A stretch of 64,000 nucleotides of DNA from Octopus sinensis (lineage: Eukaryota), in the NCBI RefSeq assembly GCF_006345805.1, contig NC_043001.1:29264001-29328000 (forward strand), written 5' to 3'. Made by a program: the position numbers and the translations under genes. Below the pieces are notes generated by a model. That model had not been told where the DNA came from. It did not search any database and saw only the letters and a list, made by a program, of their open reading frames with translations. Of the stretch, positions 11,757 to 62,995 are shown piece after piece. Numbering within the stretch: the stretch's first letter is position 1; each line of letters opens with the position of its first letter.

Positions 11757-11990
11757 ATGTACCGCATTAGCAGGACGTTTTTCAAATTTCCTGTGCGTAT
11801 CACGCACCAGCGGCAGGCATGGACTACTCTCCACAACCATCAGTCCAAGACTTCAAATTCCATCCCAAAGTCAAATCGGATTAACTATGGTACCCAAGCA
11901 GCTGCAGAACCCTTCCTTAATGGGAGCTCGTCTTCCTACTTGGAAGAAATGTATTCTGCTTGGCAGAAAGATCCGAACAGTGTACATAAG
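11757..11990 (+). CDS. OGDH: 2-oxoglutarate dehydrogenase E1, first coding exon (mitochondrial presequence + [29 protein letters not shown])
   Basis: ATG in context aaccATG. N-terminus is Arg/Ser/Thr-rich with no acidic residues, as in mitochondrial presequences. Conserved OGDH motif AEPFLxGxSSxYxEEMY..W..DP.SVH. Donor AAG|gtaagt at 11991, 234 nt, phase 0. Confidence 0.96.
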
Positions 11991-12043: not shown

Positions 12044-14589
12044 CTGTTTTATAACTAATCCTCCGTGAGTCAGATATGCTAGTTCTTTCACAAGAGTGGA
12101 AGTAATATGATATGCTGAAAAAAAAAAAAATAACAAAGTTGATGTAAACAGGAATTTATTACGCCTATCTTACATGATATTTAATATACATATATCTCTA
12201 CCACAACAGAAACGTGTCAATAGTCTACTTGTATGTTAGGAAATAATAATCTTCCTTGTAAACATTGCCGTTTGGGATATAAGATTTATTACATATGCAA
12301 TGGTTGTTACATAATTCTATCAACTGATTTCTTAATGTTAACCAATAAGTTCAGGTGTGAGTATATTTATTACTCAATATCGGAAATTTTCAAAAAGGAG
12401 GAATGTAATTTAGGAATAAAATTAACACTTAAAATTATTACAGTTAATTTAAAAATAAACGTTTGAAAGCCAGATTCCTAAAGTGAATGACGCTACGTAT
12501 TATTCTTCGTCAAAAACGTTTAAACGAAGTTAAAGGAATCTGTTTTAAAGCTAAGTATTACCAGTATGTTTTTAAAATTGCTTCAATTTCGAATATTACC
12601 AATTTCTTGTAACGAGGCGTCTAAAATTCCTTGCTGTACAAGATTTAATCTGTGAGTCAAGAGTTGTCGTTCTTGGTACCACAGCCCTCATCAAAATCGC
12701 GGGTTAATGAAAATAATTAAACCTTACTTTGGTGTAGGGTGGGGAGGCAATTACTGCTCACATTGTGTGTAGTATATACTTCAGTAAGTAAATTGAATGT
12801 ATCAACAATAATAAAATCCCCTCATATCTAATTTAGGTTGATCCCAATAATGAAGTTTATATTAATCCCGCCCATTCCTGTTGGTAGTTTTTGAAAACAT
12901 TTTCCTTTTACATAACACGTGGGAAGCTGGTATGTAATTTTTACGCCTGGAACTTTGGATTAAAACCTTCTCATGTTCGGAAAGCGTCTGGAAATGACAT
13001 TTTATTAACCAACTATCAATATGCTACCTTATATACTTCCCCAAAAAACTATCTCTTAAACATTTCTACAATAGTTTATCATCTAAAGTATATCTAAATT
13101 AGTTAATTTAACGTAAACTATTTTATTTGTTGTTCGAATTTATTACCGAATTTTTACCATTTTAAAAATAGAAATAACATAAATAAATGTCTTAACTAGT
13201 TTTAGTTAATGCTGCTATCACCAGAGTTCGAGTAGAGAGGTAAAGTGTTCATTGGCATTGTTTCCTCGCTTGGTGTTAACCGTAAAATAGTCTACGCTCA
13301 TTTTGACGTAATGGCACGTTGTTACGTGCTTAGAAGATACATCCTTACTGTTTTTGACGTCGGTTACTGCTTTGACCTTGAGACTACTGCTACCTACTTT
13401 GTGGAAAGATTTACGTCTCTTTCGTCTTTATCACCTTGAGAACGATTGAAGCAGATTTGAATCGGAGCCAATTCCTACACCGGCTCTTTTTGGTTTCAGT
13501 AGATGAAGAGCTAGATATCTCTGCACTTATATGATTATAAGTCAGTGTAGGTAATATCTCCGATTTCAAGTCGACACGAAAATACATATAACACAAGGCG
13601 ATTTACAGATACATACAACGTACATTCATAAATATCTATATAGGCGGGTAGGTGAATTAAACACCAGAGATGCTTTGTCCCACCCAAAAAATGCAACTAC
13701 AGGGTATATATTTTACTGTTTTATGTGAGTGTTTCAACCGTGACATACACGTACACACACAGACACTTATATATATTGTATCGTGGTGTATGTCATTTTA
13801 TGTTTTCCTAACTCGCATTTGTTGGAAGTTAGTTTCGGCCAAAGTCAGTTTTTATTTGGAATTACTGATCTCCTGGCTGCACGTCTTCTTACCGGTTACT
13901 CTATAGTGTGTACTGGGTTCATTTTATCGTGGCACCAACACTAGAGATGTCTTGATTCCGGACTTTACGTTGTCTCCTCATTCGCCAACTAATTTACAGG
14001 GTTTATTTAGTGCACTTGGCATTCCTTCGATATAACTCGACAAAATCAAAACATTTCACTTCGGATATTTCCGTGGGTTGTGGAAATTATGCCAGTAATG
14101 TCTCATTTTAAACTTGAAGAAAAAAAAATGCCTTGCATATTTGTTCTTACCTGTTTCATGTGTGAATGCAAAATCCGCAAATTTCCAAGCAGAAAACAGA
14201 ATCGAACTGTCATTTGCTTCCACGCAAATACCCGAAGTGAAATGTTTTTTGTCGTGTTATATCGAAGGAATGCCGTGCACTTTGTTGTGGCTTCAACTCT
14301 TCTAAATTTGCTGTGTATTCAACAAGACTAAAGACTCATCACTATTCTGGGTTGTGTCTGTTCATTTGGGGCAACATGATCTAGTGGGTGAGAAGAAAGG
14401 GCAGTAACAAATAATCCAGAATTAGATAGTGAAAAAAACAAATGTATGACGGTAGAAATACAATGGTTGGGTGAATGTGTTAGCGGCGGGAGAAATAGAA
14501 AATGTAGTACTTGGAGAATTTAGGAGATGGTAATGGTTGTTGCGTATTAGCTGGTAATAGAGCCAGTCATTGAACCAATCCTATGACTG

Positions 14590-15599: not shown

Positions 15600-18430
15600 A
15601 AGATAGAGGCATATAATAAGAGAACAGAACTAACAGTTTTTACTGGAAAATGTGCTAGGGATGACAGACATGTGGCTAGTGCATGATTCCAGCTAAATGC
15701 AGGCTAGTGCATTGCAACAGTACTATAGAAAGTGCCTTAAATGCAAAGAGACAACCCTGAAAAGACTGGAAGAAAGGGAGCAGCAGAGAATACCTAGTTG
15801 TTAAAAAGAAGCTGAATGTCAGGTATGCATAGCTGGAGGAGAGGCAGAAAAGAAGTTTGCACGCATTTTATGGCATCAAGTGTTCTGCATTGCTAGACAG
15901 TATTGAAATTTTCGTGAGAAATCATCATTTAATGTCTGCTTTCCATGCTGGTGTGGGTTGGACGGTTTGACTGAGTGCTGGCAAGCCAGGAGGCTGCACC
16001 AGGCCCCAATCTGATCTGGTGAAGTTTCTACAGTTGGATGCCCTTCCTAACACCAACCACTCCGAGAGTGTAGTGGGTGCTTTTTACATGCCACTGGCAT
16101 CAACCCCACTCAAATGGTGCCTTTTAGATACCACCGGTATGGGAGCCAGTCAGGCAGCACTGGCTCCCATGCTGGTATGTGAAATGATAATAGTACACTT
16201 ATTCTCACTGACATTGGTAGGAAAGGTATAGAGGTGTTACTCTGGGAAGCTACTGAATGTGTCAACAATGGGACCAGCCATCCAAGTTGACAGTATTAAG
16301 GTAGATAGAACAATAAAGGACATGAAGGTAGGGAAAGAAAATAAGCTGGCAGGGATAGTTGCTGAAATTCTTAAAATACACTGCAAAGTAGGGCACAGGC
16401 TGGTCACTTGAAGAGTAATTCAAGTAACACAGTCATACCCAATGCAGTATCATCATAAATTAAAGAGGCAAAGGAGATGCACTAAAGAGATGTAACTACT
16501 GAGAGATCAGTGTTAAACCGGATTATGATGTGACATAAATGGTTATTGCAAAATTGATTAGGGACAGGATTATGGGGTTTGGCTTTGTCTTGAAAAGAGG
16601 CACCACTGGGACCATATTCCTTGTGAGACAACTGCAAGCAAAATGCATGGATAGGAATATTTCCCTATACCTTGCATTTGTCAATCTGGAGGTCTTTGAT
16701 AGGGTCCCATGCACTTTGAGTTGGTGGTCATTAAGGAAATTAAGAATGAATGAATGGTTTGTTAGAGCCATACATGCTATATATGAAAGATCAGTTAGCA
16801 AAGTGAAAATCAGCAATGAATTAAATAATGAATTTAGTGTGCATGTGGGAGGTACATCATGGCTCAGTTCTCAGTTCCTTTCTATTTATTTTATTTCTCT
16901 AAGCCATTACAGAGGAATCTAAGGTACTGCCTGTGGGATGCCCTGCATACTGATAATTTATCTTTTCAGTAGAAGAATTGAAGCTGGAATTCAAGATATG
17001 GAAAGAAAATCTGGAATTGAGAACCCTTAAAGCAAGCTTAGCAAAAGCAAATGCTTTACTAATGAATTTCATTTGATCCATTTGATTTACTAATGAATTT
17101 CATTTGATCCATGCGCAATTGGAAAAGTAGACATGAAAAAGAAGGGACACATAAAAGGTGCAGCAATATCAAAGGAAGATTAACCAGGAAAATAGTTTTT
17201 GTGTGTAGCAGATACACTGGGGCAATAAACACTGAAGATGTACAGAAAACAGGTTCCATCATATGCCAGAGGAAGAAACTAGAAGTAGTTAATAGCTTCT
17301 GCTACTTAAAAAACAACGTCTGTAGTGGGGGTGTTGGTTGCTCTGAGAGTGTAGAGACTGGGCAAAGTTCAGAGAGCTCTTACCTCTGCTGGCAACTAAA
17401 GGCCTCTTGCTCAGGGTGAAAGGTAGACTGTATGATGCATGTGTGCAAACAGCCATGCTACACAACAGTGAAACATGGGCCATGAATGCTGAGGACATGC
17501 GTAGGCTTGAAAGAAATAAAGCTAGTATGATCCACTGGATGTGTAATCTCAGTATGCATACAAGACAGAGTGTAAGCACCCCAAGAGAAAAGTTGGGCAT
17601 AAGAAGCATCAAATGTGGTGTGCAAGAGAGACGACTGTGCTGGTATGGCCATGTGTTACATATGAATGAAAACAGCTGTGTAAGGAAGTGCCTAACTCCC
17701 TAACTTTGGAAGGAACCTGTAGAAGTAGACCCAGGAAGATATGAGATGAGATGGTGAAGCATTACTTCGAACATTGGGCTTCACACAAGCAATGACAGGA
17801 GACCAGGACCTTTGGAGATACGCTGTGATTGAGATCTGGCAACTAAAGTGAAATAGTTTTTGTATGTGGCAAATCCTCAGGAGGAATAAATACTGAAAAT
17901 GTGCAGAAAACAACTTCCGTCACATTCCAGGGGAGAAAACTACAAGTAGTTTATAGCTTCTTGAAGCGTTGGGCAATATATGCTTAAGACCTGTTGAGTC
18001 AAGTAAAACCATTATCGTAGCTGGGGCCGGTGTCCTCTGGCTGACTCCCGTGCTGATGGCACATCAAAGGCACCATCTGAACGTGGTCGAAGCCAGGTCT
18101 GCCTGACTGGCTACTGTGCCTATGGCACGTAAAAAACACCAACCAATCGTGACCGATGCCAATAACCCCCTGACTGGCTCCTGTGCCAGTAGCACTTGAA
18201 AAGCACCATCTGAACATGTTTGTTGCCAGGCCTGCCTTACTGGCTCCTGTGCTGGTGGCACATGAAAAACACCCACTACACTCTTGGAGTGCTTGGCGTT
18301 AGGAAGGGCGTCCAGCTGTAGAAACTCTTCCAGACCAGACTGGAATCTGATGCAGCTGCTGGTTCTCCAGACCTCAGTCAAACTGTCCAACTCATGCCAG
18401 CATGGAAAACGGAAGTTAATTGATGATGAT
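15600..18430 (+). mobile_element. Degenerate RTE LINE (EN-RT linker, RT, C-terminus, 3' UTR), interrupted at about 15922-16190
   Basis: ORF fragments 16539-16922 (RT: GFVLKRGTTGTIFLVRQLQ..YLAFVNLEVFDRVP) and 17407-17703 (LRVKGRLYDACVQTAMLHNSETWA...RRLCWYGHV); frameshifted. Confidence 0.9.
15922..16190 (-). mobile_element. RTE 3' end nested in reverse orientation inside the RTE at 15600-18430
   Basis: catcatttaatgtctgctttccatgctgg...ggatgcccttcctaacaccaaccactcc; RTE-like coding sequence resumes on the far side. Confidence 0.8.
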
Positions 18431-18955: not shown

Positions 18956-20400
18956 AGAGAAGTTTCAGGTGTGGAAGTAAGGTCTAGAATTGAAAGGCCT
19001 TAGAGTCAACCAAGCAAAAACCAAAGTCGTAATAAGTAGGAAGGCAGACAGAGCACAAATCCCTTCAGGTAGATGGCCATGCTTGATCTTTAGAAAAGGC
19101 GTAGGTTGAAACTCCATAAGATGTACTCAGTGTAAGCTATGGACACACAAGAGGTGCAACAATATAAAAAAAAGGCTAACTGGGAAGATAGTTTTTGCAT
19201 GTGGCAAACGCTCAGGTGCAATAAACACTGAAAATGTGCAGAAAATAGCTTCCGTCCCATTCCTGGGTGAAAAACTAGTTGTAGTTGATAGCTTCCGTCC
19301 CATTCCTGGGGAAAAAACTAGTTGTAGCGGGGATGGATGCTCTGAAAGTGTAGCTGCTAGAATAAGAATAGCCTAGGCAAAGTTCAGAGAGCTCCTAACC
19401 TCTGCTGGTGACAAAGGGCCTCTCACTCAGTAAAAGGTAGACTATGACACATATCTGTGAACAGCCATTCTATATGGCAGTGAAACATGGGCCGTGACTG
19501 CTGAAGACATGCGTAAGCTTCCAAGGAATGAAGACAGTATGCTTCGCTGGATGTGTAATGTCAGTGTGCATGCATGACAGAGTATAAGTACCCTGAGAGA
19601 AAAGTTGAACTTAGGAAGCATCAGATGTGGTGTGCAAGAGAGATGACTACACTGGTATAGTCATGTGTTGTGAATGGATGAAGACAGCTGTGTGAAAAAG
19701 TGTCACACCTTAGCAGTTGAGGGAACCTGTGGAAGAGTAAAACTCAGGAAGACCTGGGATGAGGTGGTGAAGCATGACCTTTGAACATTGGGCCTTACCA
19801 AGGCAATGACAAGTGACCTTTGGAGATATGCTCTGCTTGAGAAGACCCGGCAAGCCAAGTGAGACTATAACCATGCCTATGCCAGTACAGCATAACCAGC
19901 CCATTTAAGAGTACCCTTCAATCATTAGGCAATAAACTGCACTTGTGAAGACCTGTTGAAGCAAGTGAAATTGTTGTTGTGGCCGACGACACTACCAACT
20001 GATTGGCACCCATGCCAGTGGAACATTTAAAGCACCATTCGATCGTGATCATTGCCAATGCCACTTGACTGGCTCCCATGCCAGTGCCATGTAAAAGGCA
20101 CCATTCGAGCATGATTGTTGCCAGCGTCACCTGACTGGTCCTGTGCTGGTGGCATGTAAAAAGCACCATTTGAGCATGGTTGATGCCAGTACCACCTGAC
20201 TGGCCCTTGTGCTGGTGACACGTAAAAAGCACCCACTACACTCTCAGAGTGGTTGGCATTAGGAAGGGCATCCAGCTGTAGAAACTTTGCCAGATCAGAC
20301 TGGAGCTTAGTGCAGCCTTCTGGCTCGCCAGCCCTCAGTCAAACCATGCAATCCATGCCAGCATGGGAAGCAGATATTAAACGACAATGATGATGATGTA
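18956..20400 (+). mobile_element. 5'-truncated RTE LINE
   Basis: Homologous to 17000-18430; 3' UTR with several tandem aaaagcaccatt units and a GAT tail. Confidence 0.88.
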
Positions 20401-28585: not shown

Positions 28586-28765
28586 TCTTGGGATGTGTAT
28601 TTTCGAAATACAGCAAGGGGAGTTAGTTCTGCCTACATACGTCCACCTACATTAGGTGGAGCTCCAGTACCCACCAGTACAGAGATGGTGCCTGCTGCAG
28701 CTATGCCCAGTGAGAAGATTATTGAACATCATCTCTCCGTGCAGTCGATTATCCGGTCTTATCAG
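28586..28765 (+). CDS. OGDH: OGDH coding exon 2 (SWDVYFRN...EKIIEHHLSVQSIIRSYQ)
   Basis: Acceptor tttccatttctag, donor CAG|gtgaga, 180 nt, phase 0-0. Matches the conserved SWDxFF...DHLAVQSLIRAYQ segment. Confidence 0.96.
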
Positions 28766-30499
28766 GTGAGATTAATTGGTGATTGTTTTGTGCTTGTTTC
28801 TGCTTTTAAATGATGTAGAATAGATAATTTGTTAGCATCACCATCATCATCAAAATAAAGCATTAATTGGTAACTTTTAAAATATGTTGGTTACTTTTAT
28901 GTTTCTTTGTAAGAGTAGAGAAATATGTTAATTTTTCCTTTGTTCATTGAGAGCTTTTTCTTTTATTTGAGAAATATATAATTTTAATCATTATAATAGT
29001 TAATTTAATAATATTTTATATACTTCACTCATTTCTAAAGCTTTAATTTGTAAAAATTCCATTGTAAAGTTTTAAGTTAGCAGCTACATGCATATTTTGG
29101 TTTAAATCAGTCTTGTAAAATTATAAAATCAATATTTCAAATGTTTCTCTCTTTTTTTATTGCATTGTGATTAGCCAGTGCTGTATTTGAATTTGAAGAA
29201 AATTGCATTCTTTTCTGTTTTCTTTTTATTTGATAACAGGTGATGATTGCTATTTTCTTGGAGTGGATAATTTTTATTTGATTATAAAATAATTTTCACA
29301 TAAACACCTAGGAACATAACAAAAACCAACCATTTATTTTTCAGTTACTTCTACTAGAAACTCCTCTTAATTCAGCAGAATAAATATTTTCAGTTTTACT
29401 CCTGCTTTTTAGCTTTGTGATTTGTGATTATTAATGATCCTGATCAATTGTTTAGGTCCAATGTTTTATTGCAACAATTGTATATTTATATCATTAACCA
29501 AAGTCTCTATTGACTGTTTTCTCCTCTGTTTTAAAAAAAATTGCTAGTCATAATTGAAATTCTTTGTTTTTGTCCCTAAAGAGATTTTCTTAATTTAGTT
29601 GTTGGAACTGTAAAATGGATAGTTAGCTTCCATTATAAGAGTGAAAAATAGTCAGGAAATTGAAATATAATGAAGTTTCTTTATTTGTATGGTTTGTTCT
29701 AGTAGAGACAAATTTCAAACAGGAATGTAGCTAAATGTTTTAATTGGACACATGGGGAAAGAGAGGAAATACTGAGCTTTGCTAAGATATATAATGTTAA
29801 GCTCAAGGCCTGAAATTTTGTTGGGAGGTGTTAGTCGAATCTATCCTCCACACTGCTGAACTGGTATTTATTTTATTTTGTTGACTCTGAAAGGATGAAA
29901 GGTAATGTCAACTTCAGCAGAATTTGAACTCAGGATGTAAAGCCAGAAGAAATGCTGCAAAGTATTTTTTCCAGTGTGCTAACAATTCTGCCAGCCTGCT
30001 GCCTTGATAAGCTATATAATACTGAGAAATGTTTTCAAACACTCTGAAAAGAGCTAATCAGCTCACTATTTAGAAATGTATTGCTTTATGCAAAAGCTGC
30101 TCAGCAGTAAATCTCTCAAGAAAATTAAATATATATGTGTATAATGCTAAAATATACATTCTAGTGTTTGTAGCTTCATGGCATAATTTATGATCTTTTA
30201 CTTATTTCCAACCAAAGGGATGTGGCTATGTTGAAGCATTGCATATATGTCCAATCAAACTTTATTTTAAAGCCAACTAAAAAATTTTCCTAGTCATTCT
30301 TTGAAATATGTTATTTTCTGAAATGAACACACACCTCCTTTTAATGGCTCTGAGGAAGCTTAAGGATGTTGCACAAATATTGCTTCTTATAGCTGAAACA
30401 GCTGTAAGCTAATGGAGTTGATTACATGATTTATGTTCCCTTATGATTCATTAATTAACTTAATATATATATATATATTAGTGTTTCATTTATTAAATG

Positions 30500-33496: not shown

Positions 33497-34850
33497 ATCA
33501 TCATCATTGTCATTGCTTAACATCTGCTTTCCATGCTGACATGGGTTGGATGGTTTGACTGAGGACTGGTAAGCTGGGAGGTAGCACCAGACTCAATCTG
33601 ATTTGGTAAGGTTTCTACTGCTGGATGCCCTTCCAAATGACAACCACTCAGCAATTGTAGTGGGTGCTTTTTATGTGCCACTGGAATGGGAGCCAAGTCA
33701 GGTGGCACTGGCATCAGCCACACTTGAATGGTGCTTTTTATGTGCATTCCAGGTGGCACTAGCATTAGTCACGCCTGAATGCTGCTTTTCATGTGCCAGT
33801 CAGGCAACACTGACATCGGTCACACTTGACTGTTGCTCTTTACATGCCACCAGTATGGATGCCAGTCAGGTGGCACTGGCATCGGCTACGCTTGAATGAT
33901 ACTTTTCATGTGCCACTGGCACAGGTGCTAGTCAGATGGCACTGACACCAGCCACAACAACGGTTTCACTTGGTTCAACACATCTTCACAAGTGCAGTAT
34001 ATTGCCTAACGATTGAAGGGTATTTTCAAATAGGCCAGTTATGCGACACTAGCATCGGCCACAGCTACCATCTCACTTGGTTTGCCAGGTCCTCTCAAGC
34101 ACAGCATATCTCCAAAGATCTCGGTTGCTTGTCATTGCCTCTGATTGGCCCAACATTTGAAGGTTGTGCTTCACCACCTCATCCCAGGTCTTCCTGGGTC
34201 TACACCTACAGGTTCCCTCCACTGTTAGGGTGTGATACTTCTTCACACAGCCGTCCTCATCTGTACACAACACATGACCACACCAGTGCAGTCGTCTCTC
34301 TTGCACACCACATCTGATGCTTCTTATGTCTAACTTTTCTTTCAGGGCACTTACACTCTGTCGTGTGTGCACACTGACATTACACATCCAGCAGAGCATA
34401 CTAGCTTCATTTCTTTCAAGCCTACGCATATCCTCAGCAGTTACAGCCCATGTTTCACTACCATGTAGCATGACTGTTTGCACACAGGCATCATACAGTT
34501 TACCTTTCACTCTGAGTAAGAAGCCCTTTTTCACCAGCAGAGGTAGGAGCTCTCTGAACTTTGCCCAGGCTATTCTTATTCTGGCGCTTATGCTCTCAGA
34601 GCATCCTCCCCTACTACTCACTTGGTCACCTAGGTAATGGAAGCCATCAACTACTTCTAGTTTTTACCCCTGACATGTAATGGAATCTATTTCCTGTACA
34701 TCTTCCATGTTTATTGCACCTGTGCATCTACCACACACAAAAACTATCTCCCCAGTTAACCTTTCTTTTAATATTGCTGCACCTCTTATGTGTCCATAGC
34801 TTATGTCGGGTACATTTCATGGAGCTTCTACCTATGCCTTTTCTACATCA
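33497..34850 (-). mobile_element. 5'-truncated RTE LINE, antisense to OGDH
   Basis: ORF 34621-34073 (ARIRIAWAKFRELLPLL...LHGSETWAV...RRLHWCGHV...RPRKTWDEVVK...RDLWRYAV) plus 3' UTR repeats and tail. Confidence 0.92.
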
Positions 34851-38346: not shown

Positions 38347-39550
38347 TTGGGTCATCCCATAAATTATGTGATTTTTTTATACTTTTATTTTTCAAAATTA
38401 TGATAAAAAAAGGTCTTTTTTAATCTAAAATATACTCCCCTTCATACTCTACAATGCTCTTCCATCTATCTGATAGACTTGTGGGGCCCCTCTTCCAGAA
38501 TTAACTTGTCCGTGAGGAAAAATTCTCTTCCAGTACTGTTCTGACCTCGTCTACAGAATTCATAATTCTACCATCCAAATGATTTTGAAGACTGCAGAAT
38601 AAATGATAATCAGATGGGGCAATGTCTGGTGAATGTAGTGGGTGGGGCATTATTTCCCATTCAAACTGCTCCAGCCTTTGGAATGTCATCCTCACTGTAT
38701 ATCACTGAGCATTATCCTGATGGAAGAACACCTTTTGTGTTGAAACCAAAGATGGTCGTTTTTCTTCTGGTGCTGACTTAAGCCGCTCAAGCTGTTTGCA
38801 GTAGATCTCCTTTGTTATCATTTGTTTTGGGTTTAAAAGTTCAAAGTGGTCTAAACCTTTCATATCCTACCAAACAGATAACAACACCTTACATGGGTGA
38901 AGACCTTCTTTAACCTGGGGTGCTTGTGTTTCTCCTTTCCCTACTCACTGTCTTTGGCGATTGACATTTTTATAGAGAACCCATTTCTCATCACCAGTCA
39001 CTATTTGATCCAAAAAAGGTTTGTTCGTGAATTGTGACAGCAAAGAAGAGCACACATTCTCTCTTGCAAAGTTTGTGAGAAACCCATTGACCCAGTTTGC
39101 TGACTTTTTTCATGACATGCAGGTGAATGGTTGAATAACCAAATCCAAGCTTCTCTGCTGGTTCCTCAATAGTTACAGTGGGATTTTGTTCCACCAGGGT
39201 TTGTAGGATGCCCTCATCAAGCCCTACAGATTTTCCAGGACAAGCCTCATCATCTAGGCTGTAGTTTCCGGCCCAGAGTTTCCCTGCACTTTCCGTTGCA
39301 TTGTTGCCTTCATTGAGCTTGTAAAGCAAAATATGCCAAATATACTCCTTTGTCACTTCCATTATAGCTTTGAAAAATTAACTGTCAAAATCGAACTGCA
39401 CTCTTCAAAACTTGCACTAAGAATAAGGACTAGGTAAAATTACTACCTGTTTTTATAGCAAGTTGATGCAGGTAGTTTATCCTGTCCCCCCCCCCTCCAA
39501 CTTTCAGTTCATGCAGTTGGAAATAACGCATTATTTATGGGATGACCCAA
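38347..39550 (-). mobile_element. Full-length but inactivated mariner transposon (1204 bp)
   Basis: TA TSDs at 38345-46 and 39551-52. TIRs ttgggtcatcccataaat (18 bp perfect, 22/24). Frameshifted transposase with WVSHKL (WVPHEL-like) and HSPDIAPSDYHLF (YSPDLAPSD-like). Confidence 0.92.
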
Positions 39551-39801
39551 TACATTATATGGAATATTTTGTCAAACTTACTCTTGATATGTATATTATG
39601 ATTGTTCTTACAAATATGCATATATGTACACACACACACACACACACCACACACACTGTGTTTATTTAAAATAAACAAAAAAACCCATAGTTTTTACTTT
39701 GTTATCTATTAAAAGGAGGAGAGCTAAATACTTGGTTCCTTACACCATATTCTGTAGATAAAACTGTATGTCTGTTCGTTTTATCTTTCCTTTTCAAACA
39801 G

Positions 39802-39904
39802 ATTCGTGGCCATAATGTAGCTAAATTGGATCCTTTAGGAATTGCTTCTGCAGATTTAGATTCTGAGACTCCACCAGAGCTAATTCTGACAAACTATGGA
39901 TTGG
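39802..39904 (+). CDS. OGDH: OGDH exon 3A, mutually exclusive ([34 protein letters not shown])
   Basis: Acceptor ctttccttttcaaacag, donor TGG|gtatgt, 103 nt, phase 0-1. IRGH..A.LDPLG motif present; joins exon 4 in frame (G+AT = Asp). Confidence 0.94.
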
Positions 39905-40379
39905 GTATGTATTGAGAGCCACTGTAGGATATGTAACAATTTTTTTGGTTACAATTTTCAAATGTTTCTTTTTTACATTACTTCCACATTGAATTCTTCA
40001 ACTGATACTGCTGTAAAAAAAAAAAATTGTTGCAATATATTCCAAATGAAAATATCGCTGATGATAATTTCAAATATTGTTTTATGCATTTGAATAATAA
40101 TAATAATAATAGTAATCATCATTATTTAATGATGATGATGATAAAATAATCATGCTGGCATGAGCTGGACTGTTTGACAGGATCCAACATGTGTGTTTGT
40201 AGAGTGAGAGCTGTATGGTGGTGGAGAAATAGAAATAATTTGGTGGCTCAGAGGGATAATCGGTGTAAAATGTGGGTAGAGATAATAGTTTAAGGATGAA
40301 GAATGGATATCAAATGAAATGGTTAGAGAGATGATGGGCTGTGAGGGTATCTTGAGGAAGATGTTGGGCAAAGGGCCCA

Positions 40380-40692
40380 GTTGTGCATAAACTGGCACTC
40401 TGCTATGGTGATGAGAGTTCCAGTTGATCCAATCAATGGAACAGGCTGAAATTAATGTGCAAGTGGCCGATCTCTCCTTGGATATGCAAACCCTTAACAC
40501 ACTTCTCACAGAGATTCAGTGTAACAAGGCTGGCCATTTGAATTACAGGTACAATTAAATTTTTGCTAGCTGGATGGACTGGAGCAATGTGAAATAATGT
40601 GTCTGGCTCAAGGACACAATGCACTGCCAGGAATCAAACTCACTACCTTTATGATCATGAGACAAACACTCTAACCACTAAGCCATATGCCT
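40380..40692 (-). mobile_element. tRNA-derived SINE
   Basis: Reverse tRNA head (ggaatcaaactcac..ctctaaccactaagccatatgcc) and tgtctggctcaaggacacaa box. Confidence 0.65.
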
Positions 40693-40694
40693 TC

Positions 40695-41110
40695 AGAACT
40701 TAGTTTTGCAGACTTGGGTGGGTCTTCTTGAGACCTGCATATCAACACTCGTCCCAGACCTTTGTCTTCATTCTCTGTCTTCCTGGATTCTTCTTGGCTC
40801 TCCCTTTTCTGTGAACTCTGATCCTCATATTGCATGACATTTGCAATTCTCTTCCTTTCTGCCTCACCTTTAACCAAGTATACTTGTCACCTAGCTGTCC
40901 TTTTAGCCATTTGGTAATGCTTCTTGCTACCATGTTCCTTCTAGGTTTTCCAAGCCTGTCTCTTACCCCTTATGAATCGCGTAACAGAAATAGGATATGC
41001 TCTATATTGCAGGAAATATGAGTTTTGTATCCCACCATTCCTTTATTAGAGGACAGTCTTTTTCCTGGTTGGTAGTAGAATTTAAATGTCTTCTGTGCAG
41101 TGCCCAAGCG
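40695..41110 (-). mobile_element. RTE EN-RT linker fragment
   Basis: KGEAERKRIANVMQYEDQ matches the corresponding region near 15840. Confidence 0.55.
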
Positions 41111-41450
41111 GGGTCTTGTTTTATATAAGGGATCATATTCTCCCTCATGTACTGTTACACTGATATCTTGTATATGTAAATATCAACAAAACTTTTAAAA
41201 ATTACATTCTGGTTTTGATACTGGAGATACAAAGGCTCACTGATGGTTTCTGTTGTTGATAATCCTGGATAGCTTCTTTATTCTCATTGTTATATTTACT
41301 ACAAAAATACTGAATTTGGTTCAGATATTAAAGATATTTAAAAGTCTGTTTAGATTTTACCTATAGGTTTCTTCCAAGAAGTTTCAAAGAGAAATTCTAT
41401 CCTATCTGTTATAGGAGGCACAAGCACTTTCACACACATGCATACATATG

Positions 41451-41595
41451 ATGGAAACTTCTGCCTACCAAATTCTCTCAACAAGGCTTCAGTTGACCCG
41501 AGGCTATAGTAGAAGACACTTGCCCAAGGTACCATATAGTGGGACTGAATCCCAAACCATGTCATTGAGAAACAAGCTTCCTAACCACGCAGCCT
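41451..41595 (-). mobile_element. SINE 5' half (tRNA head + CORE-like box)
   Basis: gaggctatagtagaagacacttgcccaagg...gggactgaa. Confidence 0.7.
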
Positions 41596-43110
41596 ATTTA
41601 AACATTTTTAACTCCATTGTGTTTCCAGAATAAATTCAGTTTTGCTGCCATAACTGCTATCATTATTGGAAATAGAAATATTTCATTCCTTTTTTCCAAC
41701 ATGTTTTTCATTTGAATATCCTTTAAATTTGTTGTTACTTCTGAATGTGAAGCTGGTATCTTATTGTTTCAAATATGGAAAAAAGTTTTTGAATAGATAA
41801 CAATGTCAGAAGAAATATTTAAAAAAAATTCAGAATTTTTATGTTTCTATCTGTGACAGGCTTTCCATCCTTACCACTGCCTCTTTAAAAATAAACTTGA
41901 TTCATTCCCTTTACAGCTACTGTTTAAGACAATCCTAATCTGAGACTGTTGTCACTATATATGTATATGTTTCACGAGTACATATATCTGAATGTATGTA
42001 TGTGTGTGTATTTGTACAGACATACACACACACATTGCCAATGCTCTCTATGGTTATTGCTGTGTATCCTCTTTTGTCCACCTATTAGTGCTAGCTAGGC
42101 AGTTCCCATCACCTATGCTTGACCCTGATCGTGACAATCCATCCAAATCATGACAGCTTAGAAAGTGAACATACAGTAATGGTGTTGCACAGCAAGTGTC
42201 TATCTAGTTAAATTAGTATAATAACAATTTTTATGTTAATATGAATAAGTATTTACGTGCAGTATCAAACAGGTTGGTAATTTAGGACGGTGAAAAATTT
42301 TGGACACTGTCATATGTGAAAGTGTTAAGTAGTAATGTACGAAATTGATTATTGCCAATTTTGGTTTTACGTTCATATTGATCTATTCATAGGATTACAG
42401 TTAACTTCTACGAGTTAATGGCAGTCCTTTGAAATTTTTGGTTGATATTAACAACTATGCATATCGAGTTTATAAACTTTATATATTTTCATTTGGAAGA
42501 TTTTGTTTCACTGTAGTAAACAGTGCAAGAATTCATACAATGTAATGTAAGTTGTTTAACAAATAGTTTTATTCCAGGGAATAATGAAGGCTAAATAAAA
42601 GATCCTACCACCTATTTACAAAAATTTTGATTTGTAAAGATATTTTTTGTAATTTCACATTCACAGCTTGAAATAATGGTTAAGTAAAACTTGATGAAAC
42701 TGTTAACTAGTAATTGACTCCAAATATATATTACTTTTATGCTAAAGTTACTTCTATTTAAATTTTTTTTTCTTCTACGCAGCTTCATCATCATCATGAA
42801 GTAAGCTGCGTAGAAGCAGAAAAAAAAAACATTAATTTTTTTACTGAAGGAATTTGTATAAAAAATTATTGAAATGTTATAATCAAAAATTTAATAATAG
42901 GTAGTAATATCTTTTATACACACGTATATTTGTGCATGTGTGTTTCAGGCCTACAATTATACAAACACTAATTATTTGTTTTTCTTTCAGTGCTTTGGAG
43001 AAATTCGTTTTGCATCTGACAGTTGAGATGAGTTTTCAGGGATCTGGATCGGTACTTTCATTCACTACTAGTTCCTAATTTGTGTCTTTTTTTGGTTTCT
43101 CTCACACTAG

Positions 43111-43210
43111 ATCCGCGGTCATGAGCTAGCTGCAGTTGATCCACTTGGCTTAGATCAGCGCTCAGATGGTTCATCTATGTCCGAGATTTTAATCAACCAT
43201 TACGACCTTG
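43111..43210 (+). CDS. OGDH: OGDH exon 3B, mutually exclusive paralogue of 3A (IRGHELAAVDPLGLDQRSDGSSMSEILINHYDL)
   Basis: Branch-like cctaat at about 43075, pyrimidine tract, acceptor cactag, donor TTG|gtaagg. 100 nt, phase 0-1 as in 3A; IRGH...DPLG motif retained. Confidence 0.9.
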
Positions 43211-45970
43211 GTAAGGCTAGGTGTCTGATGCTGCTACTGGTATAATTCTACTTGTCAATGTTGTCACCAGTTTTCTAAGTCTTAATATTTCATTATTCTA
43301 TTCTTTTGCTAATGAAAAGATATTCTGTTTTCTCATTTTCTTTCTCTCTGTTTTAATTTCCTCTGTTCTTTCATTCTTTAAATTTGGTTGGTTTTGTGCT
43401 TATCTTCTTACATGTAACTTCTATAATTTTTTAACTAATTCATTTGATCACATCATCCCTCTCCTTCATAAAGTAGTCTGAATTTTTTTGTCAAAGTCTA
43501 TTGTTCACATTACTAGATTTACTAGACTTCAGAGTATCACTGGAAACAATATTCCATTTTATTAATTACTGAGCATTTTGTTAATTTCGGAAATGTTAGT
43601 GACATTGAAATAGATAATTGTTGGCAGTTGCACTATGTCTTTTGGTGTTCCCCTTCCCATTTCCTTCTTAATGAAGCATATTATTGTTTCCTGAACATTC
43701 ATATTCTTATCACAGTCTATTTCAGTCCTTCCAACACTTTTTTCGGTCCAGTTGTTGCAAAATAGCTTAAATCTTGCAACAGTACTTTAAATTAATTACT
43801 TTGGTTTCTCATTTAAGTCCTGTAGGAAAATTTTGTATTGCGTGTGCTTGTGTATTTGTGCGCATAGACGTTATAATTTTGGCAGTAGTTTAATGCTTAC
43901 TAAACATTTTGATTTGTTTTTCTAAACTTTAAGTGGATATTTATTTATTTTTTATATTTGTTCAGCTCAGGAGTTTTTCACATCAGTATCTGCTTTTTTG
44001 TTAAATTAGTAAAATTGCCATGATTTCACACTTTAATATGTGCACACAATCAAGTGTGTGCATGCATAGTCTTTTCAGAAGTTGTTTTGTTTTGGTTTTC
44101 CTTGAAAATGAGAATCGGAGTATATTTTTAGAGCATGTTACTGCAATTATTTTAGCATGTTGCTTCATTTACATGTGTTCTTTATTGATATGAGTAAGTT
44201 GATTTGCTCATAACTACTTTGTTTAGATGTGTATATTATGTATTCATGTTCTAGCTAAATTTATCTTTTTTTTTTCCTGTAACGTGTTTTATGTGTAATG
44301 CAAGTAACGCTACTAGTGTACCAATGCCTTCAATAATCGTATGTTGTTGATAAAATAAAGTTTAACTAGTTATTGCACATTTTTCATAGCTTCCCAATCA
44401 AGGCTACTCTGAGGTTCAGCAACAATTTGAATTTTAACCTACAGTTTGTTGGTTATTAAATTTATTAAAAGTAAAGTTGTTACTTAGCCCCAGGTTAATG
44501 TTGATTGAGTAGCAACAAAAGTTGTGCTTGTAAGATCTTGCAGAAACTCATGGCTTCAGTTTGCAAATCATTTTATGCTTAAGAAGCACTGACAGTTTTG
44601 ATGGATTTTCATGTGTGACAAATCTTACATGTAAATTACTTGAAATCTTGTGTATGTTTTCTGTTGTAAAGCTGTTAGTCTGTATTATGAATGCAAGTTA
44701 AAGTTTATGTTGCTGATCCAACTGAAAAGAAATAATAAATAAAATTCAGCAGTTGCCTAATTTTAGTTTTTGATTTTTGTGATCTAGGTTCTTTTTTTTC
44801 TTTTTCTTACACCAATGACCTACCTACATGCTTGAAAATTTTAAAATTTATGCATTATTTTGACTATTAAAGAAAAAAATTGGCCTTTCTGATAAGGCAG
44901 TAGTTACTGACAGTCTTTTATCTTTTGAATGTGTGATAAAAACAGAAACGAAAGAAAAAAACAGGAAATGATTTTATCACGTTGAAACTAAATAGCAATT
45001 AAATTACTAGCTTTATACAGTTTGGTCTCAAGTTATTTGAAAGTTTTTGGCTCTCAGTCAACAGATTTTTGGCTTTTTGGTTTGTGTGTGTGTTGCTGGT
45101 TTGGTGGAGAAAGTGCTTGTACTCATAGCCTTCCCACAGTCCCTCAGGACCTGTGATACTGAGACAGTAAAGGTTCCTTCTGTTGAACAGCAAGTTGATG
45201 GCTGCTAGAAAAACATGGGCTGGAAAGAATGTCCTGGAGGGAAGGGATTGGGTGAAGTAGTTAGTAGGGAGCCTAGTGTGCTGGGTACAATATAGATGAT
45301 GGGAGATGAGTGAATTGGAAGTGTTTTAGTAGAGTTCACAGGGGATCAACCAGCTTTCAGGAGTATATACCACTATAAGTGGTAGAAAAACAGAAAGAGC
45401 TCATTCATGAGTCAGAGGTTTCTGTTATGATTTTTCTGTGAGTTGACATACCTTTTTGCATTTATTTCACTGAGCAGAACCCCAAATGTAGTGTTAGTAC
45501 TCTAATGCTTCACTCTTTCATTGCTATATTTCTAACTAAAGTGTGGTTTAATTAAATTCTAGTAAGTAGGATGCTTTGATGGCATAGCTATACTTAAAAA
45601 AAAAATTATTAACCTACCAGAGTTGTTTGAGACACAATTTAAAAGGTTCGTTAATCTATTATTGAAATTTTACTTCAAAAATGCAGGTAAGTACAGGTTA
45701 AAAATCTGTAAAATGTAAAGTTAGACTTTCTTAAAGTATCACCAGAATGTGAGCTGGCAGAATCATTACACCATGTGACAAATTGGTTGGCAGCATTTTG
45801 TCCAACTGCTTATATTCTGAGTCAAAAATTTGCCTCAGCAGAATTTCATCTCTAGGCAGTGCTCCAGCATGGCCGTAGTCAAATGACTGAAGTGAATAAA
45901 AGAATATAAACAGTTATCAATAAACATATATATTGCTAAAATATTATGTATATACACTTTATATGTATAT

Positions 45971-46468: not shown

Positions 46469-46982
46469 ATTGGGAGATGAGGTTTTAGGCGGCAGAAAGA
46501 AGACAGGATTGAGATGAAATGCTTTGCGGTGGTGTGAATAAGTTTTTGTGAGTGAAAGTTTTTATGCTTCAGCTAGCATTTGAGACGAAAGACAACGATA
46601 ACGCTATTAGATGGGGATACAATAATAATAAGGCTTGCAAAAACAATGAAAAGAGGAAACAGGTCGGGAACTTTGCTGATGTTTTTTCATCCTGCGGAAG
46701 CGAGTGAAGGTGAGATATATACCGAGAGAGAGAGAGAGAGAGACAATGAAAACAGAGGGAGAACCGACACCACATAGCGAGAGAGAGAATTGGGAGATGA
46801 GGTTTTAGGCGGCAGAAAGAAGACAGGGTTGAGATGAAATGCTTTGCGGTGGTGTGAATAAGTTTTTGTGAGTGAAAGTTTTTATGCTTCAGCTAGCATT
46901 TGAGACGAAAGACAACGATAACGCTATTAGATGGGGATACAATAATAATAAGGCTTGCAAAAACAATGAAAAGAGGAAACAG
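46469..46982. repeat. 194-bp direct duplication (46469-46662 and 46789-46982)
   Basis: Period 320; one mismatch seen (agacaggatt vs agacagggtt). Confidence 0.9.
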
Positions 46983-47009
46983 ATATATATATATATATAT
47001 ATATATATA

Positions 47010-48440
47010 TCTTATTATAAAAGGCAGATTTTATCTGCCTCCCTTTTGGAGTTATAGAAATCTACAATATAGGATTTCTTCAATTACAATTTACCTAGCA
47101 TTTTTAAGAGTAGAATGCATCGGGTCATGTCAGGTCCAGTTTTTAAAATTTAAACTCCAATTAAGCAAAATTTACAGAAAACTCACATTCTGGTGTGTGT
47201 GTCAAATGCTTTTCTTAATGTGGTTTACACCACACGCACACACACAGTGTGCAACGAATAAAATGAAAGTAAATAGCGACAGAGTGATTTGAGGAAGACT
47301 AAACTGAAAGTATTTAAACCACTACTCAAAAATAAAAAAACACAGCAAACAGAAACAAATAAATACATAACGATTTACTCCTCACACAATTTCTTCAATT
47401 AGAGTGTACCCATGATTTTTCAGAGTACTTCAGTGGGTGATGCCATAAAAAATTTCTTTCAATTTTACCACCAATTAAGACAAAATTCGAGAAAACTCAA
47501 TATTTTAACATTTCACTCCGAAAGCATTGATGTACATGTGTGCGTGCGTGAGTGTGTGTGTGTGTGTGTGTGTTTGATGGGTTGTGCGACACAGAAAGTG
47601 TGGTGTGTAAGTGAAGTGCTTTTGTTAGTGTGTGTAAAGAGACAGACAGAGTGAAAGACAGAAATAAGCGCGCGTAATTGAAAGTTTTCACTATGATATC
47701 ATCACGTGCGAAAAAATTCGAAGGGTTTTGAACAATTGAGATACAGATGTCACGCCTGTATTGAAACCATTGCTAAGCTGCCATAATTGCTTAATTAAGA
47801 CTTTGTTTAAATTGAAAGGGGCAAATATGTGACGAGGTTGAAAAAAAATACCCCAGAAAAAAAAAATGTACTGCTGGTATTTATATAATTCACTACTATT
47901 TTGCTACAATGTCGTGAAAAAGAAAAAATTTAGATATGTAAATCGAATTCGCCACCCCCTTTTCCCCATTCGCGTTTGTGTAAAAAAAATTATTATTTAA
48001 GTTTTAAAAATTATTTACTTTGTTCAAAAAATATTAATATTAATTAATTTTCAAGAATTATTTAATTTTATTCTGTAAAATAGTAATTAATTCCGCGAGG
48101 TTGTTATTCAGGCACCTAGAATGGTAACCTTCAACTAACACTATCTCCTCTGAGACCCTGCGGCGCAAGTTGACCAAAATTGAGAGTATGGTAGAAGAAG
48201 GGTTGCTCTTCCTTCCGTAGAACATAAAATTCAAATCGGACCATGTTAACACCAAAAATTATTTACATCAAAAAGATGCTTTTTTCTATGAAAATCCCTA
48301 TTTTTTACGATTTTTTCACTGCTGTGTCGCCACTTTTTGGTGTATTTCGACCAGAAAAATGTTCACAAAATTTTTACTTTTCAAAATTACAATTCCAGCG
48401 GGTCGAAACAAACCCGAGCAACGCCGGGCGATACTGCTAG
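47010..48440 (+). mobile_element. Complete non-autonomous Helitron (1431 bp)
   Basis: Lies between A and T inside (AT)n. 5' TC (tcttattataaaagg), 3' GC-rich hairpin cccgagcaacgccggg (48413-48428) 8 nt before terminal CTAG, no TSD. Confidence 0.8.
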
Positions 48441-48531
48441 TATATATATATATATGTGTGTATATATATATACATACATATATATATATATATATATGTG
48501 TGTGTATATATATATACATACATATACATAC

Positions 48532-48569
<38 letters not shown>

Positions 48570-48640
48570 TATATATATATGGTATATATATATACATACA
48601 TATACATACATATACATATTATATATATATATATATATAT
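48441..48640. repeat. Compound (TA)n/(TACA)n microsatellite
   Basis: Directly visible; source of several spurious Y/I-rich ORFs. Confidence 0.95.
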
Positions 48641-48890
48641 CATCATCATCATCGTTTAACGTCCGTTCTCCATGCTAGTATGGGTTGGACGGTTCAACCG
48701 GGGATCTGGGAAACCAGAAGGCTGCACCAGGCTCCAGTCTTATCTGGCAATGTTTCTACAGCTGGATGCCCTTCCTAACGCCAACCACTCCGTGAGTGTA
48801 GTGGGTGCTTTTTACGTGCCACCCGCACAGGTGCCAGGCGAGGCTGGCAATGGCCACGGTCGGATTGGTGCATTTTACGTCCCACCGGCA
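48641..48890 (-). mobile_element. RTE 3' end
   Basis: Same family as 45971-46210. Confidence 0.85.
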
Positions 48891-49060
48891 TATCATTCAT
48901 ATCATTCATATATATGTATATATATGCATATATATGCATATCATTCATATATATTCATATATATGCATATATGCATATACATATGCATATATATTCATAT
49001 ATATGCATATATGCATATACATATGCATATATATGCATATCATTCATATATATGTATAAG
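48891..49060. repeat. Low-complexity tandem repeat (atatatgcat / atatcattcat units)
   Basis: Directly visible. Confidence 0.85.
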
Positions 49061-49360
49061 TACATGCGCATGTGTGTGTGTGAGTTACCATCTCTTTACC
49101 TTGATATTGTGTGATATTGTAAACAAGTGTCACTGTCCTGCAAGCAGTGTCCTTCCATGAAAAATATTTCTGGCCATGGAGAATATTACCTTCCTTGGAA
49201 ATAGGTGAGGATTGGTGACAGAGAGGAGCATCCAGCCATAGAAAATGCACCTCAACAAATTCCATTCAAGCCATGTGAGCATGGAAAAGTGGATGTTGAA
49301 ATGATGATCATCATCATCATTATCGTCAACTATTATGTATCAATAACATACTAGAGGATT

Positions 49361-56969: not shown

Positions 56970-57070
56970 ATGAGCCTGATCTTGATAAAGTCTTTAGACT
57001 TCCACACACCACTTATATTGGCGGAGATCAAACTGAGCTTCCATTACGTCAAATCATCAAGAGACTAGAG
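56970..57070 (+). CDS. OGDH: OGDH exon 4 ([34 protein letters not shown])
   Basis: Acceptor atctttctgttag, donor GAG|gtatgt, 101 nt, phase 1-0. Conserved DLDKVF.LP.TT.IGG...LPLR.II.RLE. Confidence 0.96.
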
Positions 57071-57265: not shown

Positions 57266-57420
57266 GAAATTTACTGCCGACAGATAGGTATTGAGTTTAT
57301 GTTTATCAACAATCTTGAGCAGACCGATTGGATTCGTCGCAAATTTGAGGTACCTAACATCATGCAGTTTGATGCCGAAGAGAAGAGGCTTATCCTAGCA
57401 AGACTTATTCGATCAACTCG
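57266..57420 (+). CDS. OGDH: OGDH exon 5 ([28 protein letters not shown]...LARLIRSTR)
   Basis: Acceptor tttttcctcag, donor TCG|gtgagt, 155 nt, phase 0-2. Conserved YC..IG.EFMFIN motif. Confidence 0.96.
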
Positions 57421-58254: not shown

Positions 58255-58401
58255 ATTTGAAGATTTTCTTGCACGAAAATGGTCATCTGAGAAACGTTTC
58301 GGTATTGAAGGCTGTGAAGTTCTGATTCCAGCAATGAAGGCTGTCATTGATTCATGCAGTTCACTTGGTGTGGATAGTTTTGTTATTGGCATGCCTCACA
58401 G
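58255..58401 (+). CDS. OGDH: OGDH exon 6 ([28 protein letters not shown]...IGMPHR)
   Basis: Acceptor cttgccttttag, donor CAG|gtttgt, 147 nt, phase 2-2. Signature KRFGxEG and GMPHRG. Confidence 0.96.
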
Positions 58402-59688: not shown

Positions 59689-59959
59689 GGGTCGTTTGAA
59701 TGTACTTGCAAATGTTTGCAGGAAACCTCTGGAACAGATCATTTGCCAGTTTGATTCTAAACTGGAACCATCTGATGAGGGATCTGGAGATGTAAAATAT
59801 CACTTAGGCATGTGCCATGAGCGTCTGAATAGAGTAACTAACAAGAACATAAAAATGTCTGTTGTTGCAAACCCCTCACATTTGGAAGCAGTCAATCCCG
59901 TTGTTCAGGGAAAAACGAAAGCTGAACAATTTTACCAAGGAGATAAGGATGGCAAAAGA
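59689..59959 (+). CDS. OGDH: OGDH exon 7 ([15 protein letters not shown]...[10 protein letters not shown]...[22 protein letters not shown]...GKR)
   Basis: Acceptor ttctctcttttcag, donor AGA|gtatga, 271 nt, phase 2-0. GDVKYHLG and NPSHLEA signatures. Confidence 0.96.
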
Positions 59960-61109: not shown

Positions 61110-61238
61110 GTCATGAGTGTACTACTTCATGGAGATGCTGCCTTTGCTGGTCAAGGGGTTGTCTATGAAACGTTTCATCTCAGTGATCTGCCCATGTATA
61201 CAACCCATGGTACTATTCACATAGTTGTTAACAATCAG
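61110..61238 (+). CDS. OGDH: OGDH exon 8, thiamine-diphosphate-binding motif ([21 protein letters not shown]...HIVVNNQ)
   Basis: Acceptor ctttattctattag, donor CAG|gtaaat, 129 nt, phase 0-0. Carries the GDA...NN ThDP/Mg motif of OGDH E1. Confidence 0.97.
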
Positions 61239-62815: not shown

Positions 62816-62995
62816 ATTGGTTTTACAACTGATCCTCGTGTATCGCGGTCATCACCTTACCCTACTGATGTTGCTCGAGTAATCAATGCTCCAATATTTC
62901 ATGTGAATGCTGACCATCCCGAAGCTGTGATATATGTTTGCAAAGTAGCCTCTGAATGGCGACATCGATTCAACAAAGACGTTGTGATTGATCTG
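62816..62995 (+). CDS. OGDH: OGDH exon 9 ([38 protein letters not shown]...DVVIDL); gene continues beyond window
   Basis: Acceptor gtttcttttag, donor CTG|gtaaat, 180 nt, phase 0-0. Conserved IGFTT and APIFHVN motifs. Confidence 0.96.

Follow-up and report, generated by a model that had tools for sequence, protein, structure and literature searches.

Oxoglutarate dehydrogenase catalyzes one of the steps that control the rate of the Krebs cycle, and whether mitochondrial Ca2+ can activate the mammalian enzyme depends on the choice between two exons of its gene, OGDH. As summarized by Kralovicova et al. (2021; PMC7969005) from Denton et al. (2016) and Armstrong et al. (2014), the mutually exclusive exons of vertebrate OGDH are 4a (LS1, Ca2+-insensitive) and 4b (S1, with the motif DADLD, Ca2+-sensitive). 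The DADLD motif lies in a loop of the mammalian protein, is required for Ca2+ activation and is missing from exon 4a (PMC7969005; PMC9177970). The published account presents the exon duplication as a vertebrate event tied to endothermy, and names a mollusc, Lottia, as having DADLD without exon duplication (PMC7969005). Here we analyze a stretch of 64,000 nt from Octopus sinensis (NC_043001.1, positions 29,264,001 to 29,328,000; hereafter the window), whose plus strand contains the 5′ half of OGDH, coding for 2-oxoglutarate dehydrogenase E1 (E1o), with two tandem versions, 3A and 3B, of this same exon. The pair is genuine, expressed and strongly constrained. As the best explanation of the whole, it is very probable that 3A and 3B form an old, mutually exclusive pair of the loop exon, with the choice presumably made by trans-acting regulators, the aberrant products presumably directed to nonsense-mediated decay (NMD) and the swap likely having a regulatory effect on the enzyme.

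The octopus pair resembles vertebrate 4a/4b in that the exons are tandem duplicates, in the same gene and at the same position (IRGH..DPLG plus the following loop), with a combined length that is not a multiple of three; additionally, the full-length isoforms differ there alone, and one copy has an acidic ADLD loop that the other lacks. An earlier reading of the window from its sequence (the first-pass annotation) had pointed to mutually exclusive exons at this position in mammals, which agrees with PMC7969005 and with our alignments, including the presence of DADLD in 4b. The two systems differ in exon order, with the ADLD-type exon coming first in octopus and second in vertebrates, and in the intervening intron, which in octopus spans more than 3 kb and has an ordinary AG-free zone of 39 nt, whereas in vertebrates it is short and combines a mega-polypyrimidine tract with distant branch points. 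Unlike 4b, exon 3A contains SADLD instead of DADLD. There are 11 identities between 3B and vertebrate 4a, confined to the RGH/DPLG core, as the first-pass annotation had anticipated in describing a resemblance to the mammalian alternative exon limited to that core. With so few identities, and no supported grouping of these exons in a neighbor-joining (NJ) tree, we did not find evidence of orthology between 3B and 4a.

Exons were placed using a tblastn probe (a human OGDH sequence, used solely as a probe) and by reading of splice sites, and every OGDH exon found in the window has AG/GT borders (Table 1). On re-reading the sequence, the coordinates, lengths, phases, peptides and stops of 3A and 3B were all as first annotated. 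The peptide encoded by exon 3B is IRGHELAAVDPLGLDQRSDGSSMSEILINHYDL, which coincides with that of 3A in 13 of 33 residues (53 % nucleotide identity), including the common motifs IRGH, DPLG and Y.L; this level of divergence indicates an old duplication. A six-frame scan of the 64 kb gave exactly two RGH..DPLG copies, with no third one. The conceptual product carries the Pfam domains 2-oxogl_dehyd_N and E1_dh and, in a PDB sequence search, both isoform peptides matched the human OGDH structures 8i0k and 7wgr over the region of exons 2, 3 and 4, with the expected residues.

Both isoforms of octopus are already known, in that they are listed in the RefSeq/GenBank annotation. The conceptual 3A product (500 aa) is identical to the first 500 residues of P0242 (XP_029636245.1 from O. 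sinensis and CAI9722724.1 from O. vulgaris), and the 3B product (499 aa) to the first 499 residues of P0241 (XP_029636246.1 and CAI9722725.1, respectively), an agreement far beyond chance. Full-length cephalopod proteins were reached with a chimeric query of 982 aa, composed of the N-terminus from the window and the C-terminus from Elysia; the complete enzymes have 1,009 and 1,008 aa and differ solely in around 20 loop residues. Since the databases list both forms, the gain for the octopus feature itself is small. Nevertheless, within the literature searched we found no paper describing the octopus pair or any invertebrate OGDH exon pair, and what is new here is its pan-molluscan distribution, the exon order reversed with respect to vertebrates and the evidence that animals have switched isoforms at this exon repeatedly or since ancient times.

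Table 1. Position of OGDH features in the window and of homologous exon pairs in other molluscs. P and L numbers are our handles for proteins and for nucleotide loci.
Feature	Position	Strand	Evidence and remarks
OGDH first exon (ATG, MYRIS...)	11757-11990	+	tblastn and splice-site reading
OGDH exon 2, ends ...SIIRSYQ, phase 0; shared upstream donor of 3A/3B	28586-28765	+	tblastn, splice sites; agrees with P0241/P0242
Conserved flank upstream of 3A (polypyrimidine tract, cag acceptor)	39726-39801	+	Comparison with Argonauta hians
Exon 3A, 103 nt, phase 0-1, ADLD-type (SADLD)	39802-39904	+	cag/ATTCGT...GATTGG/gtatgt; in RefSeq isoform X1 (P0242/P0243)
3A-3B intron, 3,206 nt, U2-type GT-AG, 162 AG dinucleotides	39905-43110	+	
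Conserved flank upstream of 3B (144 nt), including CTAAT branch-like motif	42967-43110	+	Comparison with Argonauta
Exon 3B, 100 nt, phase 0-1, divergent copy without acidic DxDxD loop	43111-43210	+	tag/ATCCGC...ACCTTG/gtaagg; RefSeq isoform X2 (P0241, P0122)
TGA met when 3A and 3B are both included	43122-43124	+	Direct reading
Conserved flank downstream of 3B (ca. 198 nt)	43211-43408	+	First ca. 135 nt with almost exon-level conservation; candidate splicing-regulatory region
OGDH exon 4, 101 nt, phase 1-0; shared downstream acceptor of 3A/3B	56970-57070	+	tblastn and splice sites
TAG met when 3A and 3B are both skipped	57066-57068	+	Direct reading
Further OGDH exons	57266-57420, 58255-58401, 59689-59959, 61110-61238, 62816-62995	+	tblastn and splice sites
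Mactra antiquata, exon A (103 nt, GDADLD) and exon B (82 nt)	A, L007 11610-11712		
Pecten maximus, exon A (103 nt) and exon B (106 nt)	A, L008 9156-9258		
Haliotis asinina, exon A (103 nt) and exon B (103 nt)	A, L009 13386-13488		
Patella caerulea, exon A (103 nt, ADADLD) and exon B (103 nt)	A, L010 6177-6279		

Messengers in which exon 2 is followed by either 3A or 3B, and then by exon 4, are open in both cases, and the joining of one of the two between exons 2 and 4 gives two full-length enzymes. Because the length of each exon is 1 mod 3, having both in or both out gives an early stop codon: double inclusion reads ...GL DPRS* (GAT CCG CGG TCA TGA), and the direct fusion of exons 2 and 4 stops at a TAG near the end of exon 4. 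These premature stops are situated upstream of later exon junctions, and the corresponding products would be removed by NMD, leaving single-inclusion mRNAs. Exons IIIb and IIIc of FGFR2 are an example of mutually exclusive exons that are incompatible in frame and policed by NMD. The octopus pair is of this type in that the exon lengths are not divisible by three and double inclusion or skipping leads to a premature stop, and it differs from it in that NMD is predicted and the regulators are putative. The first-pass annotation described single inclusion as enforced by the reading frame. This stands as far as the products are concerned, since only single inclusion keeps the frame and the others are non-productive, but frame as the agent that selects the exon goes beyond the frame rule. 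A list of mechanisms of mutual exclusion is given in PMC7969005.

Exon 3B is a working exon, and both copies are under purifying selection. A Logan contig (L002, from run ERR12945499; 4,796 nt, with a complete open reading frame, ORF, of 1,022 aa) joins the orthologues of exon 2, 3B and exon 4 at exactly the predicted junctions. Three proteins of the same species (P0245, P0254 and P0124; 1,023 aa) carry 3A and match the L002 product everywhere outside this exon. Judging from sequence identity to octopus, 87.9 % overall for this protein and 94.2 % for that of Argonauta, the species would be a more distant cephalopod, probably a decapodiform. Transcripts with exactly one of the two exons were therefore met in a related cephalopod and in the annotations of two Octopus species, where RefSeq isoforms X1 and X2 of O. 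bimaculoides (XP_014777605.1 and XP_014777606.1) and of O. sinensis carry 3A and 3B, respectively; the GenBank models of O. vulgaris also hold both forms. The protein of O. bimaculoides differs in three residues, which assigns the window to O. sinensis or O. vulgaris, and its exons 3A and 3B and their flanks are 100 % identical to those in the window, so that this species is too close to inform on conservation.

Comparison with L002 is more informative of selection on 3B. The octopus and L002 exons differ in 2 of 33 residues and in 18 of 100 nt, with 15 synonymous and two nonsynonymous codons; the proportions of synonymous (pS) and nonsynonymous (pN) differences are 0.667 and 0.027, and the ratio of the corresponding rates (dN/dS; Nei-Gojobori, calculated per exon) is around 0.016, with saturated synonymous sites. 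This ratio was 0.017 and 0.009 for exons e6 and e9, from the catalytic core, and higher (0.096) for exon 2. As for 3A, 33 of its 34 residues are identical in the L002 species, and comparison with Argonauta reveals four synonymous and no nonsynonymous differences. Exon 3B of Argonauta hians (L004 38420-38519, GCA_054771915.1) is intact, with AG/GT borders, four synonymous changes and one conservative change.

These data bear on the possibility that 3B is an unused, decaying pseudo-exon or an artefact of gene prediction, as might be suggested by its absence from the A. hians model and by the rarity of full-length 3B transcripts (one contig among the assembled full-length ORFs, vs. at least 44 contig instances for 3A). 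There is, however, a spliced and complete mRNA containing 3B, the dN/dS of this exon is very low, with saturated synonymous sites, conservation extends to its splice sites and to its long intronic flanks, and it is present in two RefSeq annotations; we thus consider this possibility extremely improbable, and it is refuted by the L002 transcript and the signal of selection. The first-pass annotation would have fallen if 3B were never spliced and unconstrained, and neither is the case. Taken roughly, the contig counts hint at 3A as the major form. The deposited protein model of A. hians, GAB1604737.1, corresponds to the 3A isoform only, despite the intact 3B exon in the genome.

Octopus and Argonauta introns have diverged past alignment except near the exons, where the conserved block spans 452 nt around 3B vs. 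212 nt around 3A. Intronic conservation of this kind is commonly seen next to alternative exons under regulation. A conserved CTAAT branch-like motif lies 33 nt upstream of the 3B acceptor, and every 5′ splice site is of the U2 type. The long intron with its many AG dinucleotides, the short AG-free zone and the proximity of the CTAAT motif make steric exclusion implausible, as the first-pass annotation had argued from the 3,206-nt spacer. We searched the conserved intronic blocks for docking/selector RNA pairing: duplex z-scores were no lower than -2.7, and the longest complementary runs (9-14 nt) were not above the shuffled maxima, with one exception. This exception, a 12-nt pairing flanking 3A, was dropped because it is not kept in Argonauta. 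A search of the flanks for motifs of Rbfox (GCAUG), PTB, MBNL, CELF, Nova and QKI identified nothing distinctive that was conserved.

Exclusivity could also be mechanical, due to competing RNA structures (docking/selector, as in insect Dscam), to steric hindrance or to U2/U12 incompatibility, and pairing sites could be hosted in the long conserved flanks of 3B and in a conserved element of intron 2. Nevertheless, duplex energies and complementary runs stayed within the shuffled controls, apart from the 12-nt run lost in Argonauta, and neither the uniformly U2-type 5′ splice sites nor a 39-nt AG-free zone in an intron of this size fit such mechanisms, so that we regard them as improbable. We favor instead that the choice between 3A and 3B would be exerted by trans-acting splicing regulators on the long conserved flanks of 3B, with frame surveillance as a backstop.

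The element in intron 2 (positions 29192-29257) is situated 474 nt downstream of exon 2 and is ca. 85 % conserved with Argonauta. It contains a long pyrimidine tract followed by ACAG/GTGATGA, and at 29239/29240 (CAG/GT) a 3′ splice site abuts a 5′ splice site, as would be expected of a recursive splice site (zero-length exon), within an intron of 11 kb.

In AlphaFold models of both isoforms (mean predicted local distance difference test, pLDDT, of 73), which compare with the human OGDH structures with a template modeling score (TM-score, normalized to the target) of 0.88-0.89, a long helix (residues 121-144) closes with the constant IRGH part, while the variable part forms a loop followed by short helices. 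Exon 3A codes for SADLD, with Ser replacing the first Asp of DADLD, and 3B for LDQRSDGSS in the loop, with no DxDxD and one added Arg; 3A keeps the ancestral ADLD-type loop that is replaced in 3B. From the sequence of the loops, the isoforms likely differ in regulation. The swap may alter the allosteric regulation of E1o between tissues, through its sensitivity to Ca2+ or to adenine nucleotides or through its contacts with partners, although our confidence in this is moderate to low. That the difference in octopus concerns Ca2+ is something we only infer, by analogy with mammals. It is a real possibility, if not the one to which we lean, that the swap acts on some other property of E1o, such as its stability, its sensitivity to ADP/NADH or the contacts of the linker with E2o and E3. 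The effect of the D>S change on Ca2+ affinity is stated as unknown, although D>A at this first position of DADLD abolishes Ca2+ sensitivity (PMC7969005), and the variable segment comes directly after the flexible N-terminal linker involved in contacts with E2o and E3 (PMC11436768). Conversely, the sole role of the loop defined experimentally is Ca2+ activation in mammals.

Several points weigh against our overall explanation of the pair. The splicing evidence comes from the transcript of a related cephalopod and from RefSeq X2 models, which stand in for reads and tissues of the species in the window. The searches for splicing-factor motifs and RNA pairing came out empty, so the mechanism of exon choice is reached by elimination. 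In both models the loop has pLDDT values below 50 at residues 155-159, and structure prediction consequently does not separate 3A from 3B. Finally, with Ser in the first position of the motif in 3A, both octopus isoforms may be Ca2+-insensitive, with the functional difference residing elsewhere.

We also found the A-then-B pair, between the equivalents of exons 2 and 4, in Argonauta, Mactra, Pecten, Haliotis and Patella. In the last four, the order is always A and then B, with AG/GT borders and lengths of 1 mod 3 (Table 1), and the deposited models use the B exon alone, omitting an intact ADLD-type A exon upstream. Additionally, there are pairs of RefSeq isoforms differing only here in Gigantopelta, Pomacea, Littorina, Babylonia, Physella, Dreissena and Ruditapes. 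The annotated mollusc pairs share exon, phase and order with octopus, with A as RGHN..ADLDSE.P.EL..NYGL followed by B. The A exons have in common RGHN, ADLD, NY.L and a G/gta[tg]gt-like donor, and the B exons, including octopus 3B, an HY near the end (..HY.[FL]) and the donor TTG/gtaag[ag]. Beyond this, the B copy is lineage-specific, with LDQRSDGSSMSEILINHYDL in cephalopods, L..EEKELQVQYYNL in heterobranch gastropods and I.KPSMENLEPSTF in heterodont bivalves. By these comparisons the pair is pan-molluscan, occurring in cephalopods, bivalves and basal gastropods, and we favor one duplication, no later than the base of the conchiferan molluscs; the pair arose before cephalopods, gastropods and bivalves split. 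The limpet Patella has the pair, which conflicts with the remark on Lottia in PMC7969005; that remark deserves re-checking.

An exception was Bradybaena similaris, in which two gene copies (L005 and L006, ca. 1 Mb apart in AP039598.1) contain a B exon only. These OGDH copies are near-identical and code for the same protein of 1,021 aa, and an A-type exon is found in a different gene, located on another chromosome (P0127). The exon types may be partitioned between gene duplicates in this species, or this may be an assembly duplication.

Alternative exons at this position are also present in a nemertean (Lineus X3/X4), sea stars (Patiria, Asterias, Acanthaster), insects and ticks. These pairs from other invertebrates affect the same exon, with the same phase, and consist of two alternative copies, or three in Lepidoptera. 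In Patiria miniata (L011), a divergent exon of 97 nt (12679-12775) is situated upstream of an ADL-type exon of 103 nt (19711-19813). The same order as in the sea star, opposite to that in molluscs, was deduced for a vertebrate (P0200, Suricata) and for insects (P0182, Tribolium; P0213, Danaus chrysippus) from gene models that read through two or three alternative exons in series, with three RGH..DPLG copies in Danaus; these models are probably annotation errors, useful for exon order.

An NJ tree of 52 exon peptides supported shallow clades only, and no deep node. Cephalopod B exons were recovered as a clade in 200 of 200 replicates, cephalopod plus heterobranch B exons in 72 of 200, and a clade of all mollusc B exons in none of 200. 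With peptides of around 33 aa, which are too short, the history of the exon is not settled by this tree.

It can be argued that one duplication in the bilaterian ancestor gave rise to the mollusc pair, to the vertebrate 4a/4b Ca2+ switch and to the pairs of insects, nemertean and echinoderms, all of which would then be homologous. The alternative exons are at exactly the same position and are all 1 mod 3 in molluscs, nemertean, insects, ticks, sea stars and vertebrates, and the less-derived B exons of molluscs (Patella, INSADLEKNPPSELSLSHYHF) resemble the downstream exon of insects (INSADLDDRHPQELLYNHYSF), with which they group in the NJ tree. Yet the ADLD-type exon is upstream in molluscs and downstream in sea star, vertebrates and insects, the divergent exons of different phyla share only the RGH/DPLG core and the exon tree lacks supported deep nodes, and a single origin seems to us rather unlikely. 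Equally doubtful is its broader corollary, a very early bilaterian duplication whose either/or switch molluscs, nemerteans, arthropods, echinoderms and vertebrates would all have retained over more than 550 million years, the diverging copy not being the same in different lineages; if true, few conserved mutually exclusive splicing switches of animal metabolism would be older. In a weaker version, molluscs and vertebrates may have independently evolved the same kind of switch in the same exon, with or without the acidic loop. The opposite exon order and the poorly supported tree thus leave recurrent duplication or one older duplication as the relation with the vertebrate pair. The first-pass annotation had posed the octopus pair as either ancestral or convergent within molluscs; it is at least pan-molluscan, but would be homologous to the mammalian switch only if the copies had diverged differently among lineages, since the order is opposite to that in vertebrates, sea star and insects.

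From the presence of pairs in cephalopods, bivalves, basal gastropods, a nemertean, sea stars, insects and ticks, isoform switching at this exon is either recurrent or ancient in cold-blooded animals, and an interpretation of the OGDH exon duplication as specific to endothermy is thereby weakened.

A second variable site occurs right after this exon, where some isoforms contain the extra inserts AATDEDINMIMKFAR, DKVLPAELNWL, GHGHVI or DLAVFKERLRVLTVG. They were seen in Lineus X1/X2 (P0259/P0260), Ptychodera X2 (P0275), Ruditapes (P0148/P0154) and an owl (P0019), and their sequences suggest a cassette micro-exon between the equivalents of exons 3 and 4 in several phyla. Comparison with Argonauta identified no conserved micro-exon candidate in the octopus intron between 3B and exon 4.

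The window also contains probable or possible remnants of mobile elements. An ORF of 123 aa on the minus strand (38991-39362), ca. 440 nt upstream of 3A, showed a weak match, below the cutoff, to the Mos1/mariner transposase domain HTH_48 (E value of 8.8e-4; 19.8 bits vs. a threshold of 24.1), and is probably a mariner-like relic in intron 2. Two other ORFs, 34073-34621 (minus strand, 182 aa) and 16539-16922 (plus strand, 127 aa), had no match in Pfam; from their resemblance, they may be C-terminal fragments of reverse transcriptases from retrotransposons without long terminal repeats (non-LTR). The intron between 3B and exon 4 contains, at around 46500-49200, dense TA/CA-type microsatellites and low-complexity DNA, with spurious YIYIYI and HTHTH ORFs on both strands.

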